A DNA stretch of 64,000 nucleotides from assembly GCA_000708835.1 (NCBI GenBank), contig DF237169.1:1-64000 (forward strand), read 5' to 3'. The position numbers and the translations under genes are program-made. A model generated the notes under the pieces. The model searched no databases, was not told where the DNA came from, and worked only from the letters and a program-made list of their open reading frames with translations. Source of the stretch: Klebsormidium nitens. Lineage: Eukaryota; Plantae; Klebsormidiophyceae. This document shows, piece after piece, positions 26,201 through 44,483 of this stretch (the stretch's first letter is position 1; every line of letters begins with the position of its first letter).

Positions 26201-29200
26201 GGCCACCATCGCGTTCGACGCGGCCGCGAGGCGCACCACGGACGCCGCCACGTTGGCGCTGACGTCGGCGCCGGACGGAAGGGCTCCCGCGGAAACGGCG
26301 TCGCTGACGGATAGGTCCACGATGCCCTCGAGAGTGCTGACGTCAGTCAGGTTCAGGGATGACGAGGAGCTTGCGTCGTAAAGGCTCGCTTGCTCGGCCG
26401 CCCTTCGTGGAACGATCAATCCCATGCCCGGGTTAGTTTCCCGGTTTTCGCTAACCATGACCGGGGTTGGTCCAACCGAGCAGCTCCCCGGCCACCCCGC
26501 CAATTCCGAGCAGGTGCTGACGTCGAGGAGTGACGTCACAGCATAGGTTGGCGCCGAGTCAGCGAATGCGGAGGACGGAACGCGGCTGGCTTTTGCCGGC
26601 GACGGCAGAGCCTGGTTTTCGAGGAGGAAGGTCGCCATGGCGCGGTACACGGACCGGGAGAGGGCCAGATCGACGGATGGCGACCGAGTTGTGGTCGCTC
26701 CAGCAAGGAGGGAACCGAACTGCACGGCGCAAAGTGAGAGGTCTTGTTTGCATATTTGCACTTCCTGATTTTTGAGTGAGATGCGTTGACATGATTGCGC
26801 CTGTCATGGGTCCAATGTGGAACGGTATGCTGCTTGTGTGGGCTTGATTCCCATTTGCTGTTTTTCTCGGCTTTTGACTTGCAGCATCGCTAGCGTGGGC
26901 TGCAGATAGGACACAAACCTTAATCCATGCATGCTCTTGACAGAGTCAAGGAGGCAAGAGGAGACGCGTAATTTGATGAAGCTATGAACACTGGCATCAA
27001 GCAAAGTCTGAGACAAAAAGTAGACTGCAATCCTTATCTCTGCTCTGCTGCGTCATGTATACCTGCCTGGGCCCTTCCAAGCGACAGAGCTTGCGAATCC
27101 CAATTCCAATCAGACTTCAGAAGTGTCGTTAACCGTAAGCCACGACTCACAGCAGACTCTCGCCAGCGGGAAGAAACCCTGTCGTTCCACATATTTGCAA
27201 TACGCGGAAGGAGAGTAGCTCTTAAGCAGAAACGCAAGGAAAGGAGAAGCATGCCAGGTTTGACACCGTTTATCTATTGGACCGAACATGAAGCGGAGTG
27301 CAACTGGCGGAACCGGACTCTCTCACCTGCGCTGCCACGTTGTTTAGATACCCTACCGCCTTGAGTACCTCTAAGCTCCCCGCAGTTCCCGCCAGTACTC
27401 CCTGGATCGGATCTCCTGACGTGATCTGAGCCGTCGATGGCAGCCGCAGAGCGTTCCTGACCGCCGATTCTGCTTGGCTCTCAGTCACGAAACCGACGTC
27501 CATCAGCGCTTGGACGAAGGTGGTTAGCGGGCTAACCACGGCGGAACCCAGGGGGGCGACCATGATCGTGGTGGGGAAGAGGTTTGTAAGGCTGTCGACG
27601 CAAGACGGGTCGCCGAGACGGAGCATGACTGGCCCGTAGTTTTGGATTGTCACCTGAAAACGGAGCGAAGGACATGGTGAAACATTAGTAGCCGCCTTTC
27701 AGCAGATGCTTGCGCGTTGCTTCTGTGCTGATAATGGTTTGAATAGTAACCACTTGGCTCAGTAGACTTAACAATTCGAGCAGGGCCTTTCGTGAACTCC
27801 TGTCATCTTCCGCGCATTAATCTTTTCGTTTACAACGCCGAATTCCACACAAAGTGTGATTGTCCTCAAATCCCAATCGATTGAGTCAAAACATGGGCAC
27901 CTACGATCCGTGAGTACGACTGGTTTCTGCGTGAGGAACTTACCTGTCGAAACTCGAAGCCGCCAGTCGCGTTCGTAATGGTCGTCGCCTCCCCCAGATC
28001 GCACCGACGATTGCCGTTTGCGTCCATGCACAGCGTGCAGTTGGCCAGGTAGCCATAGTACACAATGCCGGATACTGCAAGCAAACGAGAACTGAGTTCA
28101 AAAGTGGTTCCTAAACATCCCCAGTTTACTTCATCAACCGAAAGATCAGAATTAGAAGACCCGAGTACGTGCTCGATCGGCGCGCGTTTAAACTACAGAT
28201 GAACTGCTGTGAGTTACTTTTCAGAGAGGCTCCCTTTCTGGACGCAACTCCTTTAGTCGGTGTACTTTACCTTGATGAGGCCCATACTCCCTAACATCGG
28301 ATTGAGGCCCTTTTCCACGAGTTGAAGAAAGGCGACTCACCTGTCACTGGCGCCATGAGCGGCCGCCCTAACGCCGATGGCTGATTAGATGGTCTGAATA
28401 TGCAGACGCCGAAAGAGCGATTCGGACGGTAACCAGAAAACATTCTAGAAACTAGAAACGCAGCAATTGCTTCAATTAGAGTTCGACAGATAGAGGCCGT
28501 CACGCCGCACCCTCACCAACTGATGGTGCCGTGAGCGGCCGCGCGGACGGCGACGGCTGTACGGACGGGCTGGGGGATGCGGACGGCGGGAGGGCCGATG
28601 CGGACGGCGATGCGGACGCCGAAGGCGATGGGGAACGGGAGGGGATCGGGGAGAAGGAAGGGGCGGGCTGGACGGGGCTTGCGGGCGACGCGGAAGGTGA
28701 GGGCGACGGGAACGCGGTCGCCGTGAGGCAGACGCCCGAGACCGGGTCGCAGGTGTAGCCGGTGGGGCAGACGCCGTCGTTGCATTGCAGCTGCAGACGC
28801 GGAGGATTCAGGAGTTTTAGTAACATTCTCGGAGCCCTGTACTGTCTCGTTGGCAAGGCATTGATAGAGTAAGGCGATCGAAATGCTGTCGGTTCGGAGT
28901 CTTGCCAGGGAAAGTGGAAATATCTGCTTGTAAGATTCCGCGCCTCTGGCAGAGTTTGCAAAGGAGCGAGCACAAAGATTGATGTGTCTGGAGGGAGTGC
29001 GAGGCTGCTTGTCTTGCGGAGGAAATGAGCAGCAAGTCAGCGCAGGGAGACACGCGAGCCTTACCTGAGAACAGTCCGTGCCTGCCCAGCCGATAAGGCA
29101 TTTGCAGGTGCCCCCCACGCAGACGCCTGCATCAAAATGCCTTTCTCTGAGACGGCGGGCTTTGGGGCGTCTTTCGAACATAAGATCGGTCAAAGCGCAA

Positions 29201-37859: not shown

Positions 37860-39482
37860 GGCTGTCTCCAGAGCCCTTCCCTGATGCATCCCTGAAGAAG
37901 ACCTTCAGCATACTGAAACTGAGTTGAGTCTCCAAGCGGATAGTGTTTTCTTAAAAGCCTCCAGGTACTGTAGGATTTTTAGAGGGTGCGCTATCGTCTT
38001 CATCATTGACCTCCTAAAGAGCTGTGCTTGATCATTCTGTGGCCAAAATTCACTGATTTGATATCTAACCACACAATTCTTCAAATGCCTACCTACGTAC
38101 TTTTCCTTTTCAGTTGATTGCGTCAATTCATAAGTCCTCGATTGCCCACATTAATGATTGCATCACATTGTTCGAAGGTGTGAGAAGCAGCATGCTGCAG
38201 CTGCCAAACTCCCTAATCAACTCGCGCATGCGCCCAAAAATGCGATGCCGCCATCATGCAGCCTCCTCCCCAGCTCTTGAGCGCTGGTTGCATGGCTCAG
38301 CTGAGAGAAGGATTTTTAGGGTTTCAACAAATAACCGGACGTCCGAGTGCATTCAACGTGTCGGACCGTCACCGTGCGAAGCCTGCCTTGCCACTGGCCA
38401 GAACGCCTTTCAATAATGCGGACGTCTAAAACTCAGAATGGTGCCGCGGCCGGCCAGCCCGCGGGGCGCCAATTTGCGCCGGCGGCAAGTTCCGCGGCGG
38501 CAGGCCGCCACTAGCCTGGCCTACGCGGCTGGCGGCCCGCCCGTCCATCATTGCTCTGCATACGGAGCCCTAGCATTTCAGAGGCATGATGCATGGAGAG
38601 ATCAAGACGTAGGGGTCACCCATTACACCGACGGTCTCCGGACAGTGCCGCGCAGTTAGACTTGGAGAGCACTAAGAATTATGGACGGTCACCATCGTCC
38701 AAGTATTTAGTATATACCGTAGTCTTTGTTAATGATATGCAATCTTTGCATGGTCCAGTGCAAGAGCTGCAAAAAGAGACTCAAGAATAACATTGAGTTC
38801 ACATAATTGAAACTATGGCGACAAGCGCCAAGAATTATGATGGGGCGCGCGGCAGCGGCGCGGCATATTGGATTCATTTCCATGTGTGAATCCATGTCAA
38901 GGTGCAAGTACTTAGACTCAATCATTAACTTTGCTCACACATATTGAACCGTCAAGCATGACATCACGCAATGATCGGAAACGCCTGCATGTAAACTACG
39001 ATCTCGACTCGAACAACGCGGTTCGTCATTGACTGGACGGTTGCCGCGTCAAGGCCGCCGCGCCTGGGCTCACTGTGACAAGATCTTACACAGCACGGCC
39101 GCAACAACACCAAATGTCATATGGGCATGGTATTTAGTACGTCATATCGAACACGACGAAGCAAAACATTGGATTTTGCCAGAAAGTGAACCCTACACCT
39201 CATGCCATGATCGGCTGCGCGAAATGATCTCGGAGCTAAGTTGGTGTGCACCTTAGGACGGAACCGGTCTCTAGCTGGTCATGCATACAGATCAAACCCT
39301 CAAGTATATGCGATTGTATTGATATTCACAAGATCTCCTTTTCCTCATGCCAAAACCGTCATAGACAAGTGAGTCTTCTGATTAAAGCGGAACTGGAAGC
39401 CGCATGAAATTGAGTTTTGGAAAGTCAATCTCATTACTTTCATGGCATGAGCATTCCTCTTCACCTCGTAAGAAGCCAGCCA

Positions 39483-39549
39483 CCACAGCTTAATCGGGGT
39501 CTGATGCCTGCAGAGCAGTTTCGCAGCAGCACCGTCACAGAAGCTGCAG
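39483..39549 (-). promoter_or_regulatory. SECIS element (3' UTR selenocysteine insertion hairpin)
   Basis: Minus strand reads CUGCAGCUU-CU-GUGAC-GGUGCUGCUGCG-AAA-CUGCUCU-GCAGGCAUC-AGAC-CCCGAUU-AAGCUGUGG. Helix I is CAGCUU/AAGCUG, the non-Watson-Crick core is UGAC/AGAC, helix II is GGUGC-UGC/GCA-G-GCAUC, and AAA lies 12 nt after the core. It sits about 130 nt downstream of the TAG stop. Confidence 0.85.
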
Positions 39550-39680
39550 AGGGTGCCCCCATGAGTAAGCGAAGTAAACATGAATCACCAGCCTAAGCAC
39601 TTACACGTACACGCAGCGTATGCATCCGTCTTGCTGACTTGTCTCAAGTATCCTGTCACCAACATGGAAGTCTCGTCCGG

Positions 39681-42275
39681 CTAAAGCAGTTTGAGAAGCG
39701 CACTGCGCAGTGCAGACACGTCGTATGTACAGTTGCGCGGTTGAGCGATGAAAGCCACCCGGTCTTCGTGCAAAATATAGAACCGCAGGGGCCATGGGGA
39801 GAACTCGGTGTCGAACGGGTTGTCGGGCAGCGTGTCCACGACCATTTCGATGGCGAAAGAAAACTTGTCCACAAACTGCTGGGCCAACAGGCTGCGCTCC
39901 GCCTGCAAGAAAAAGATCGTCTATTGTTATCGAAATGTTCGAGTACTGTTGAGAAGGTGCTCATTTTCTGTACAGAAACGAGAGAAGGTAGGTTCGTTAA
40001 TCTCGGGCATCAAAAAGCACGATGAGTTTGCCGTAAGAGTAGGTTGAAATACTCAAATACTCGAGCAGCTTCGACGCTTTTCTTACTTCATGTTGACAGC
40101 GGCGTAGCTCCCTTTCGCATTGAAACCAGAAAAGATTGAAACGGCGCTCTTAAGGTTACGAGGGGCCAGATGAAACAAGAAGAAGCTCATGGGGGAAAAT
40201 AGACGCAGCTGTGTCCCTACCAAAATGCCCGTCGCATAGTTAGAAATGCATGTAGTCCATCAATAGGACTCTCTCCTGCCTGCTGTTCTCCTAGATCATT
40301 CCAAAACTCGTCCCGAGAAACTTCGTCATTCGTCTTGATTCTTACGCGCTCCACTTTGTTGCTATAGTAGCAGAGGTTTGATCGGCAGACAGAAGTTGAA
40401 ACCCGAAGCACCTTGGAGATGTTTGAATCCACCAAACGCGGATTGACAGAGTTCTATCAAAGCCAAAGGAAATGTGACCGAGCAGGAGCAGCGCTGTGCC
40501 GGACTCCTTCGCAATTGCTCACAGATCCGACTTGGCCGACAGAACTTAGATGTCAAAGAGAGATTAAACCGCTTTTAGAGTTTGGGCATCTCATGGTCAC
40601 TGCAGTTGCCCCGTCGTCCAAGGTCAAGGCTCTACCGAATCTTCGTTGTCTGTCAGCGCTGCACCAATGGCTGACGCTGTCAATCCTCGAATGAAGCAGG
40701 ATATTACCGTGGTTTGTGGTTGGACAATGCTATTTCCAGGACCGTTGAACCGCCCTGAGTTGATGGGCCACTCATCCGCTGCATGAGCCTCCGTTATGTA
40801 CACCCCCAGAAACTTGGCCCGTCCCTCGAACTCCCGAGAGAGGGAGTGGAAGGTCGGTACCAAGCCTCGGTACGGGGGTCACGTCATCGAACCTGGGTCA
40901 AGAGATGTACTTTTGAGTACTTCATAGCTGCTGCTACGAATGAAAAAGTTCTGAAAGGGTCATAATCTGTGATTTGGAAGATTGTAATCCATCCCTGGAC
41001 AGATTGGTCGAATCCTTCGCCATGTTGCACATCCACCCGACGTCTTCCTCTTTTGCTCCTGATTACTTCTGCCGAGCAGTATGGACTCTTCTCTCAGAGG
41101 ACTCCTGAATATTCCATCTGCTAGCAACATTGGATTAGTGAACTTCAAGTGTCGGCCTTTCTTTGGCTTACCTGCCAGGAGAACCAGTGGCCGTGCCCCT
41201 GCTGCCAAGTCCTTTAGTCTCTGCAAAGCTCCATCCAGCTTCATCAGCATGATGTCAGGCACCGAGTCTCCAGGCTTCAGGTGTCCGGCCCGAGAGCGCT
41301 GGTACTTGACGTAGAGAGGGAGCTCCCTGAAGTCAGGGTCATCGGGATATGTCCTGGCTGCGGTGCGGAGTTGCAGCAAGGCGGACTCCATGTTTCCTTC
41401 CAGTCCAAACTCTCGCACTACCTGCAGATAAAGTGAGAGCGAAATATTGTGGTCTTGTCCGGCTTGAGAAGTCTGCAGGGGCTGCGAACAGTGACTGCTG
41501 GAGTTGAGAAGATTTGAAACAAGCAGCTGCGAGATAGTTGACTGGCAGGGAGCTTGAGATTGACAAGTTTGTCGGGGCCATCCTTCCACTTGTCCATGTT
41601 TCTCAGATTACACTTTTGCAAAACTGGCTTAGCGGTCTCAACAAAATGCAGGGTGAAGATATATAGATACTGGTCAGGCCAAAATTACAAGCGCTTTCAT
41701 TCGCCTGGAAGTACCTCAACCAATATGTTATAGTCAAAGCCAGTCCAGGGCCTTGACGATGAGCCAATTCAGTCCAGCTAACAACCGAGTCTATCTGCGC
41801 ATTGAGCTGAAGAATAGAGGGATGCAATGCTTCTGCTTGAAGAACAAACTAGAAGATCAGCGACTGCTCAGACCTGTTTTTGGAGCTCAATTGTCACATC
41901 CATCCAGTCTGTCACCTCCATCTTTTCTGCCTCAGCATACTTCTTCTGCGTGGCTGGACTGTGCCGAAGCTCATGTTCTCTCCTCAGCATTGCTTTCAAA
42001 GTGTCTTTGTCAATGACTGCGTCCACTCCTCTCCCCACTTGCGTTAGATCAATTATATCCCGGCTGCCTTCATTTGCACTGCTTGTCAAATCCAGAATGG
42101 CCTCATCCCTCATATGGAAATCTGGCAGCGGACAACTACCTATGTTGCATTCATGTGGCTCGTCATTAGCAGCTTGCTCTTGTAAGCGATCGTACTCCGA
42201 CTGAAGGGCTGCTATCTGGGCCCTCAGAAGATTCAGCTGGGGGCTCGCCCCTTCTTCTATGACCACTGGGTCCAT
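39681..42275 (-). CDS. Iodothyronine deiodinase-like selenoprotein (thioredoxin fold), ~352 aa, selenocysteine encoded by TGA at 40879-40881
   Basis: Exons 41874-42275, 41172-41421, 40708-40892, 39681-39902 are phase-compatible (total 1059 nt). Spliced product: ...LKPGDSVPDIMLMKLDG...ARPLVLLAG-SMT-U-PPY...FLGVYITEAHAADEW...QPQTTAERSLLAQQF...VVDTLPDNPFDTEFSPWPLRFYIL. This matches the deiodinase family pattern RPLVxxFGSxTUPPF / FLxxYIxEAHxxDxW / D..N..Y..PERLY. Confidence 0.9.
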
Positions 42276-44483
42276 GGTGCCCCTCTGCTTTCCCTTTGAG
42301 GAGTCATGAACCGCTGTCCTGAGGGTCCAGAAACAGTGGCGCCTGCTTTCCTGCTTGGACGAAAGATCGGCTAGCTGAATGAGGGAACCCTGGGCCTCAG
42401 CCCTTACTGGGTAGTACTAGTACTAGTAGCTGCTTCAGTGCTTTCCTGGAGTTCTGCCGCGCGCGCGCAGCGTGCGGCGTCGCTAACTCGCGGGTGGCAA
42501 ACCCTGTGCTAAACCTCGCCAGGGGACTGAGGCCGCCCGCCCGCGGACGGTCGCGTGGGCCGCTATATACGTCGAGATCGATCGCGGCAACTAGGCTTGT
42601 ATGATTCTGTGGTAAAATCGTCAGATAGATATTACCCGACGCTGATGTCAAGAAATCAGACAAAGTTCCGCGCCAGCCCCGGTTGAGCAGCAGTGTTGCG
42701 ACATGGCAGTATCTGCTGGGCGTTCCTTTCCACCTCTTAGCGCGCTCTGCATGCATACTGAGCGCAGACAGGCTCTTTGAAGTTGATGTTCCTGCCTTCG
42801 AAAGATTGTGCACGCGTTCTCCTTCGCGCGGGCTGAATCGTCAGGTCAATCTGCGCAACAACTTGCCAAGCTGCCGCACACGGTCGCCAGTGGTCGTCAG
42901 GTTAATGCGCGCGCCGGTGCCCCTCTTCACGAAAGTTGCGAGGAAACACCTGTCAGTTCTTAAGTACCGGGATCCAGTCGTTTGGGCGCGGCAGGAAGTA
43001 TGCTTTTGACGAATAGGTGCGAAGCACGTGGCTCTGATACTGCAACGTCGTAAAGGGACGACTTTCCCAAAGATTCTGGCGAGCCGAGATAAGAGGAAGG
43101 CATCGAACTTGAGAGTCGAGAATCAGACTCCGCAGATGGCGGTTCTTGACGCCCTTCCCCCTTGTGACCCAAAAGAGGCCGTACGTCTCCTAATGCAAAG
43201 CAGCCAGAAAGTCTCCTCCCGTCAGTCCCGTGACCTTACTGCTGATCCAACGCGAAAAACTCGCAAAGCGAGGCGCTCCAAGGGAATAGAGTTAAAGTCG
43301 ATTCTTCAGAAAGACGAAAAAAAATGATGGCGGAATCAAGGCTTGCCAAAAATGTGCTACTTCAAGTTACAGGTTAAGGTTGTTCTTCAAACTAGAGCCG
43401 GACGTCTTGCTAGATGTGCTAGATATGCCCGAACAGCTTCTGATGTCAAATCGACCGTTCGCTTGTTCGGAGTACGAGGAAGTATCATTTAGATAGGAGT
43501 CCGTCCAACAATCTTCATTGTTCCCGACCTCGGCCATAAAGTCAACGTGGCACGCCGGCGCTCCCGAGGAGTAGAAAGGTCTCATCCCGATCCGGTACGA
43601 AGTGTAAGGACCAATCAGAAATGGCCGCTGACACAGTCACTGTCGCCCCCGTCGATCTGATGCGAGACATGCCCGCTCAAGACGAGCAAAAAGTACTAGA
43701 AACTCTAGCCCGAAAGTTGTGCGCTACGTACCCAAAGCCACCCTTACCTCCGGAATATCCCCACCAGTTCTTCCAGGCAGGCACACCGCGGTTAAGCCAC
43801 AGCAGAGTTACCAGGTTCACTTAGTGAGCCCTCCAACCATTTGTTGTTGAGAATAGAGCTCCATGTACCACCGGTTCAAGTGATCATTGGTGTTAAGGGC
43901 AGTTTTCGATACTATGATGTCACTCCACGCCCTACGAGGGCGACACCGGACTCTGAGATTGTTAGCCAGACGGAGAAGTCATTTAAGAGCCGAGCCGATA
44001 ATGGTTTCTACCGAAGGTCGACAATCCCAACCCGCGCAGCAAGACCGTCGAGGCGCTCGGATGGCTGCTGGCTGCCTAGATGGTAGCCACGTGTACACCT
44101 CGCTGTAAAGACGAAGCGACGAGGACGTCCCGGCTTCCCAGAGAAGTGAACTATGTATGAAGGGTCGACTAAGGGGCGCCCTCTGCCGCTTCCCAAACCT
44201 CGTAACGATTCCACAGGCACAATCGGGCAGGGACAGACTGTCTCGCGCGGTCTCTTCACTTTCAGTCTTCACTCTGTAGGTGAGATTGCAAGAGCTATAC
44301 GGACTGCTTCGGATGCATTAGCGCGTCTAGGAGCTTTTGTGCCCGCAGCAGGTGCCTACAAAAGCCCTCGCAATTCGGCAGTTTGACAATTCTCGCACTT
44401 CGAAGCATCTCCATTCCAGAGAACCGCACGAGCTCCCTGCTAGAACCTCAAACCCACCTGCTCGACGAAGGCGGACGCCAAAG

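Follow-up and report, generated by a model that had tools for sequence, protein, structure and literature searches.

A deiodinase-like gene of Klebsormidium nitens with a predicted selenocysteine codon and a GUGA-type SECIS element

We analyzed a 64,000-nucleotide (nt) stretch of the genome of the streptophyte alga Klebsormidium nitens (contig DF237169.1 of assembly GCA_000708835.1, positions 1 to 64,000; hereafter, the window) and found on its minus strand a deiodinase-like gene that very probably encodes a selenoprotein. Specifically, this four-exon nuclear gene is predicted to specify a soluble protein of 352 residues, in which the UGA at codon 222 would be decoded as selenocysteine (Sec) through a GUGA-type, type II Sec insertion sequence (SECIS) in the 3′ untranslated region (UTR). 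The exon structure, the expression of the gene and the presence of the UGA in its mRNA are seen in RNA contigs, the homology to deiodinases extends to both sides of the UGA, the downstream codons are under selection at the protein level, and the SECIS is conserved and covaries among orthologues.

An expressed gene cut off at its UGA codon in the public annotation

The numbering of the window is that of the scaffold, with the ATG of the gene at 42275 in both. The N-terminus of KFL_002200060, deposited as "hypothetical protein [Klebsormidium nitens]", and the product of exon 1 are 100% identical, in agreement with the original prediction, made from the letters of the DNA alone, that the source is probably a streptophyte alga. 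The public model of KFL_002200060 comprises 221 amino acids, the last of them being ...LLAGSMT, and ends exactly at a TGA. Joining the four exons yields a coding sequence of 1059 nt (352 codons, with Sec as residue 222), the sole internal TGA of which lies at 40881-40879 (−), codon 222, and which terminates with a TAG at 39683-39681. Exon 1 ends with ...AAA CAG followed by gt, at 41874, and exon 2 with ...CTC CTG GCA G followed by gtaagc, at 41172, while exon 3 opens after cag with GT TCG ATG ACG TGA CCC CCG TAC, at 40892. Downstream of the TGA, the frame stays open for 130 codons, of which the first 57 belong to exon 3 (ending at 40708) and the other 73 to exon 4 (39902-39684), and the protein around the Sec site reads LLAGSMT-[TGA]-PPYRGLVPTF...VYITEAHAADEWPINSG...WPLRFYILHEDRVAFIAQPRNCTYDVSALRSALLKLL. 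On reading the sequence, we found the exon borders, the motifs and the TGA position given in the original prediction to be correct in every coordinate.

Expression and splicing were assessed over positions 39300-42400 in the assembled contigs of four runs, which come from four studies and carry two organism labels; 20 of the 24 public runs listed contain this stretch. Each of the four runs has one contig (986-1417 nt), at the top depth of that run, which carries all three exon joints, namely, 41874 to 41421, 41172 to 40892 and 40708 to 39902, and exactly these three. All three skipped stretches are bounded by CT..AC on the plus strand, i.e., by GT..AG on the strand of the gene, and since DNA contigs would not skip introns, these contigs stem from spliced RNA. 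The proposed four-exon splice is thereby confirmed. We looked for a joint that skips the TGA and found none among the contigs of the four runs, so the TGA is retained in the mature mRNA, and the RNA contigs of the four studies show no differing letters. Intron sequence was seen just in separate low-depth contigs; one of these, from a run labelled as a different organism (X9), has G for A at position 40132 in intron 3, probably a strain difference. The transcript spans from ~42395 to 39414-39477, with a depth of zero at 39300-39403, and these contig ends define a 3′ UTR of ~205-265 nt that includes the proposed SECIS hairpin. Thus, KFL_002200060 is a real, expressed gene that the public annotation cuts off at the Sec codon.

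Deiodinase homology and selection on both sides of the UGA

By sequence comparison, the K. nitens gene encodes a deiodinase-family protein ("deiodinase" being used here as a family name), the C-terminal ~220 residues of which are assigned to a deiodinase-family domain with a peroxiredoxin-like thioredoxin fold. The Pfam family T4_deiodinase (PF00837) matches three pieces of the protein colinearly, at profile positions 71-107, 115-158 and 169-235, with 11.4 bits for exon 2, 27.1 bits (E-value of 3e-6) for the 57 residues after the TGA and 16.3 bits for exon 4. The family cutoff of 27 bits applies to a whole protein, while the K. nitens sequence was searched as pieces; full-length homologues score 46-97 bits. 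The order and spacing of the matches are right, and the gap between them falls where G-S-x-T-U belongs. The motifs GSMT-U-PPY and EAHAADEW can be read directly in K. nitens and are conserved across the subfamily, and the piece after the TGA aligns from its residue 1 with the residues just behind Sec, PPF..., in mouse DIO2 (9h48; E-value of 7e-5) and DIO3 (4tr3). The UGA thus occupies the catalytic position of a deiodinase-family protein, as the original prediction had it.

A full-length homologue, P0029, matches the whole catalytic domain of DIO3 (E-value of 1e-17) and DIO2 (E-value of 5e-16), and its TGA-encoded residue aligns with the position at which Sec was replaced by Cys in the crystallised DIO3 and DIO2. 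The AlphaFold model of P0029 (predicted local distance difference test [pLDDT] of 79.8) has DIO2 and DIO3 as its top structural matches (template modeling [TM] scores of 0.80 and 0.76, respectively), followed by thiol-disulfide oxidoreductases of the ResA/TlpA type. No hydrophobic segment or membrane anchor was found in the K. nitens protein (maximum Kyte-Doolittle value of 1.02 in a 19-residue window). The proximal part of its N-terminal extension, LRRExELR...AEK...DWMDV...LQKQVxxEFG, is common to protist, rotifer and chlorophyte homologues.

The TGA is kept at two orthologous genomic loci, L001 (Logan SRR23617307) and L005 (JGI 3300060285), which have the same four-exon layout, and P0003, a transcript-derived protein of a third relative, likewise ends with ...GSMT. 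In the 130-codon stretch that follows the TGA, K. nitens and L001 differ with a synonymous rate (dS) of 0.55 and a nonsynonymous rate (dN) of 0.043 (dN/dS of 0.080), 36 of the 49 differences falling on codon position 3; upstream of the TGA, dN/dS is 0.154 over 87 codons. The same post-TGA comparison with L005 gives a dS of 0.75 and a dN/dS of 0.11, and 45 of its 68 differences fall on third codon positions. Such low ratios, together with changes that mostly affect the third codon position, argue that the frame downstream of the TGA is translated, and its predicted conservation is borne out by this strong purifying selection.

A search of 1.84 billion representatives with the 57-residue post-TGA piece (phmmer) retrieved 81 proteins, most of them aligning from their own residue 1-3, directly after the Sec position. 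Such starts are the signature of genes split at the UGA by gene callers. A profile search added 155 family members, and of 215 family sequences retrieved, 129 begin immediately downstream of the Sec position, 28 stop immediately upstream of it and 13 extend across it. The spanning proteins have Cys (one protein, P0008) or "W" (12 proteins) in the Sec column. In all three of the metagenomic or Logan cases checked (L003, L004 and L008), this "W" is a TGA, and the other Trp codons of L003 and L004 are all TGG. The idea that every "W" entered in the databases at this column is a mistranslated TGA holds for these three loci and is false for the bdelloid rotifer Rotaria magnacalcarata, which has a true TGG (Trp) at the Sec position (L006:1874-1876). 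The codon check of homologues that had been called for thus gave TGA in L001, L005, L003, L004 and L008, Cys in P0008 and TGG in L006. The other Rotaria entries of this cluster are C-terminal halves of 117 residues, which suggests that TGA-bearing Rotaria copies exist as well.

A GUGA-type SECIS element in the 3′ UTR

Within the transcribed 3′ UTR, 131 nt after the stop codon, we found an element with the signature of a SECIS (Table 1). An internal loop separates its helix I from the quartet, and its 4-bp mini-stem assigns it to type II. We searched the window with a SECIS descriptor of our own (R-UGA, AA 10-14 nt further on, a 3′ GA, a helix II of at least 7 pairs and a helix I of at least 4 pairs), with energy limits of −3.7 and −12.6 kcal/mol from the SECISearch literature. 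This descriptor gives nine matches in 128 kb (both strands of the 64-kb window), which corresponds to ~0.02 expected per 260-nt UTR, and the element at 39549-39483 has the lowest energy of the nine (−26.1 kcal/mol). In L001 and L005, the same descriptor recovers a SECIS at the corresponding site, and it also detects a type II element of the form GUGA...AA...GA in L003, a distant homologue, 65 nt after the stop. The eight other matches in the window, all of weaker energy, lie at 14260-14230 (−), 8048-8006 (−), 2239-2182 (−) and 28698-28726 (+), with four more on the (+) strand.

In an alignment of the K. nitens and L001 UTRs, the SECIS is 84% identical, compared with 53% for the UTR before it and 36% for the UTR after it. 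In the three-orthologue alignment, 96.5% of the cells are paired, and compensatory double changes occur at five pairs (one beside the quartet, from G-C to A-U, one in helix II, U-A versus C-G, and the other three within the mini-stem), while none were found in the slid controls. The GUGA, the AAA and the 3′ CGA are invariant across the three orthologues, and RNAalifold arrives at the same helices independently. Minimum-free-energy folding of the complete 3′ UTR shows no excess stability over shuffled sequences (z = +1.5), so the overall stability of the UTR provides no argument. In Chlamydomonas and Ostreococcus, the SECIS core is reported to be predominantly GUGA_AA, the usual green-algal form (PMC3473315), and the deiodinase-like gene of Dictyostelium has a type II SECIS with an unpaired AAA (PMC2375036).

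Several points weigh against reading this gene as a selenoprotein gene. Helix II of the K. nitens SECIS contains two adjacent mismatches, and the covariation is drawn from three sequences only. The Rfam model SECIS_1 aligns with the element over its full length and with the right landmarks but reaches only 11.9 bits, the gathering score being 35 (E-value of 9.6 in a 96-nt search); no Rfam SECIS was found in the 3′ UTR at E-values up to 10 or, at the gathering threshold, in the whole window and the orthologues. The evidence for the fold is by proxy, i.e., through the model of P0029, which is ~33-39% identical to the K. nitens pieces. Sec at codon 222 is itself predicted from sequence and RNA contigs, and we found no enzymatic data on members of this subfamily. 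As for the SECIS that the original prediction had placed about 130 nt after the stop, its position holds up, and it is conserved and covaries; its core is GUGA, not AUGA, and its Rfam score is far below the gathering score. The three-species alignment provides a small, clean example of a GUGA-type SECIS of the green lineage that is missed by the Rfam model.

Other UGA sites in the UTR, as well as an AUGA-containing hairpin at 39404-39449, were considered as SECIS candidates and rejected, as they are without a 3′ GA or lie at or beyond the end of the transcript. The hairpin at 39404-39449 (+), which lies at the extreme 3′ end of the transcript, has a weak, chance-level match to the plant miRNA precursor family MIR1886 (16.5 bits versus 62; E-value of 2.7).

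Table 1. Features of the deiodinase-like gene and its predicted SECIS (window coordinates)
Feature	Coordinates	Strand	Details
5′ UTR	upstream edge ~42395	-	RNA contigs reach 42371-42395
Exon 1, coding part	41874..42275	-	ATG at 42275, 134 codons; acidic, helical N-terminal region
Intron 1	41422..41873	-	GT..AG; joint in 4 runs
Exon 2	41172..41421	-	250 nt; conserved N-terminal extension of the subfamily and start of the thioredoxin-fold domain
Intron 2	40893..41171	-	GT..AG, phase 1; joint in 4 runs
Exon 3	40708..40892	-	185 nt; G-S-M-T-U-P-P-Y active-site motif and EAHAADEWP
In-frame TGA, predicted Sec codon	40879..40881	-	171 nt upstream of the last exon junction
Intron 3	39903..40707	-	GT..AG; joint in 4 runs
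Exon 4, coding part	39681..39902	-	73 codons and TAG; WPLRFY and NCTYD motifs
3′ UTR	39414..39680	-	~205-265 nt; contig ends between 39414 and 39477
SECIS, type II (predicted)	39483..39549	-	131 nt after the stop, within the transcribed 3′ UTR
SECIS helix I	39549-39541 paired with 39491-39483	-	CUGCAGCUU paired with AAGCUGUGG; by eye and constrained folding
SECIS core GUGA	39538-39535	-	quartet: 5′-GUGA paired with GA-3′
SECIS helix II	39533-39523 paired with 39507-39497	-	11 positions
SECIS unpaired AAA	39521-39519	-	13 nt beyond the UGA
SECIS mini-stem	39518-39515 paired with 39511-39508	-	4 bp
SECIS 3′ GA	39495-39494	-	pairs in the quartet

Decoding, function and relatives of the predicted selenoprotein

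By analogy with the established eukaryotic mechanism, the SECIS in the 3′ UTR would act through SBP2 and eEFSec to bring Sec-tRNA to a ribosome that reaches codon 222, and translation would then run on for 130 codons. In Liang et al. 2019 (PMC6627142, File S5), eEFSec, SBP2, SecS, PSTK and SPS are predicted in the K. flaccidum/nitens genome, and a complete Sec machinery is stated for all streptophyte algal classes; a 2026 review describes tRNA-Sec as kept in streptophyte algae (PMC13578239). There are no tRNA genes in the window. Because TGA is the commonest ordinary stop codon of K. nitens (128 of 276 genes; PMC6627142, Table S1B), a reassigned genetic code is not the explanation for the internal UGA.

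The selenol of S-x-T-U-P-P-Y would serve as the catalytic nucleophile, as in vertebrate deiodinases. It is expected to sit at the N-terminus of the first helix of the thioredoxin/peroxiredoxin-like fold, with Ser and Thr next to it and the conserved Glu/His of EAHAADEW (EAHxxDEW) behind it. Since this active-site arrangement is the same as in DIO3, the chemistry would be a Sec-based nucleophilic or redox reaction, with thiols regenerating the enzyme. The reaction itself can be named only tentatively; it may be a reductive dehalogenation, with an iodinated or halogenated phenolic as the substrate, and a different thiol-dependent redox reaction is equally possible.

The latter possibility leads to the alternative that survives best, namely, that the protein is indeed a selenoprotein but acts as a general thiol/peroxide oxidoreductase (peroxiredoxin or TlpA/ResA-like) and not as a dehalogenase, which we regard as a real, if uncertain, prospect. 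P0029 also matches AhpC-TSA and Redoxin, the ResA/TlpA-type enzymes are its next structural neighbours after DIO2 and DIO3, and no thyroid hormone system is known in algae (as noted for Dictyostelium in PMC2375036). However, the best sequence and fold matches are specifically deiodinases, and the protein retains S-x-T-U-P-P-[FY] and EAHxxDxW, two motifs specific to deiodinases.

An improbable alternative is that a near-cognate tRNA (Trp, Cys or Arg) reads the UGA, giving a full-length protein without selenium. A UGA followed by C, as found here, is a leaky context for termination, and the rotifer homologue with a true TGG shows Trp at this very position. Readthrough of this kind, however, does not account for an element with a SECIS signature that stays conserved and covaries while the rest of the 3′ UTR diverges, and vertebrate deiodinases have Sec at the position concerned, other homologues TGA or Cys. 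The Sec machinery, moreover, is predicted in the genome (PMC6627142).

It is still less probable that the UGA is an ordinary stop, with the 221-residue KFL_002200060 as the product and the remainder of exon 3 plus exon 4 as 3′ UTR, even though this matches the deposited gene model, TGA is the most frequent stop codon of the species, and Rfam makes no SECIS call. The 130 codons after the UGA are open and colinear with the deiodinase profile, and they evolve at a dN/dS of 0.08-0.12 with changes mostly at third positions, while a 221-residue product would have no catalytic residue and just one third of the fold. Moreover, a stop codon well upstream of the last exon junction is expected to cause mRNA decay; an ordinary stop 171 nt before that junction should thus trigger it, yet the mRNA is well represented. 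The chance that the gene is a decaying pseudogene, or its TGA an error of the reference assembly, is practically negligible, given that nothing beyond the in-frame stop speaks for it, that the TGA is present without differing letters in RNA contigs of four independent studies and also in two independently assembled relatives, and that purifying selection acts on both sides.

We compared the predicted K. nitens selenoprotein with known systems. It shares with vertebrate DIO1-3 (PF00837; 4TR3, 9H48) the thioredoxin/peroxiredoxin-like fold, as well as Sec in S-x-T-U-P-P-[FY] followed by EAHxxDxW, and the decoding of the Sec codon proposed for it, through a SECIS in the 3′ UTR, is the one known from these enzymes. 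In contrast, DIO1-3 have an N-terminal transmembrane anchor (which is not part of the Pfam domain), whereas the K. nitens protein has none and instead carries a soluble N-terminal extension of ~175 residues with the motif RExELR...DWMxV...LQxQVxxEFG, which the vertebrate enzymes lack. The SECIS core also differs, being GUGA in K. nitens and AUGA in vertebrate deiodinases.

Outside animals, a deiodinase-like selenoprotein has been described in Dictyostelium discoideum (Lobanov et al. 2007; PMC2375036), and a "DIO" selenoprotein family has been described in algae, with ~80% of its members being Sec forms (Jiang et al. 2020; PMC7539508). Like K. nitens, these are non-animal Sec homologues of deiodinases with a type II SECIS and an unpaired AAA, the likeness to Dictyostelium resting on its published description. 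Uncharacterised homologues, namely, P0029, P0010, P0026, P0101, P0114 (a Reticulomyxa "deiodinase"), P0088 (Rotaria) and P0005 (Chlamydomonas sp. UWO241), have the same N-terminal extension and domain. As a group, these protist, rotifer and chlorophyte sequences share the TGA in the Sec column, although Rotaria has TGG (Trp) and one Logan sequence has Cys. Both the enzyme family and the recoding mechanism are well known, and the gene is a new or uncatalogued example of a selenoprotein kind already described, present in sequence databases as an unnamed, truncated hypothetical protein.

Streptophyte algae have been reported to possess the Sec machinery together with a few selenoproteins (PMC6627142), and two surveys (PMC7539508 and PMC6627142) count two selenoproteins for K. 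nitens/flaccidum, which the portions of text used here do not name. The deiodinase-like gene may be one of these two, since it could well be detected by a profile tool that includes deiodinases. A predicted selenoenzyme is here added to an alga credited with two selenoproteins in the surveys, and how many selenoproteins the nearest algal relatives of land plants possess matters for the question of when and why Sec was abandoned in plants. If the K. nitens selenoproteome proved to be at least twice the published two, the reported link between subaerial life and a near-loss of selenoproteins before land plants would be weakened.

Some homologues are fused or adjacent to ubiquitin/Rad60-SLD domains, whereas exon 1 of K. 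nitens encodes a coiled, acidic region with two [IL][IL]DLT motifs. These are AILDLTSS at 42098-42084 (residues 60-64) and DIIDLTQV at 42056-42042 (residues 74-78), both on the minus strand and both kept in L001 and P0003; they resemble SUMO-interaction motifs. In P0005, the deiodinase-like domain is fused to two ubiquitin domains. Both L006 (732-1353 and 1501-2328, Rotaria magnacalcarata) and L007 have a ubiquitin-like gene on the same strand 148 nt upstream, and in Rotaria, this and the deiodinase-like gene may be a single gene. It is conceivable, though unlikely, that these proteins form a distinct branch of soluble, mostly Sec-containing deiodinases in protists, green algae and rotifers, marked by the N-terminal helical extension and linked to ubiquitin/SUMO, whose members would be recruited through ubiquitin-like modifiers. 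Such a branch would represent a selenium-dependent redox or dehalogenating enzyme with a function unrelated to thyroid hormones.

The original prediction had also anticipated that automated annotation would truncate or split the gene, and both have occurred, as KFL_002200060 ends at the TGA and the remainder lies under a neighbouring model. This adjacent public gene model (Peptidase_M8, leishmanolysin-like; L002:4492-7397) begins at window position 40784 on the minus strand, and its start ATG (40784-40782) lies inside exon 3 of the deiodinase-like gene, out of frame. Because the neighbouring model starts there, the exons after the TGA have been taken into it. Its 5′ end is probably wrong, since the deiodinase transcript ends at ~39414-39477 in the RNA contigs, with zero depth beyond. 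Two public gene models of a reference streptophyte genome are thus corrected, namely, the truncated KFL_002200060 and its neighbour with a false start inside it.

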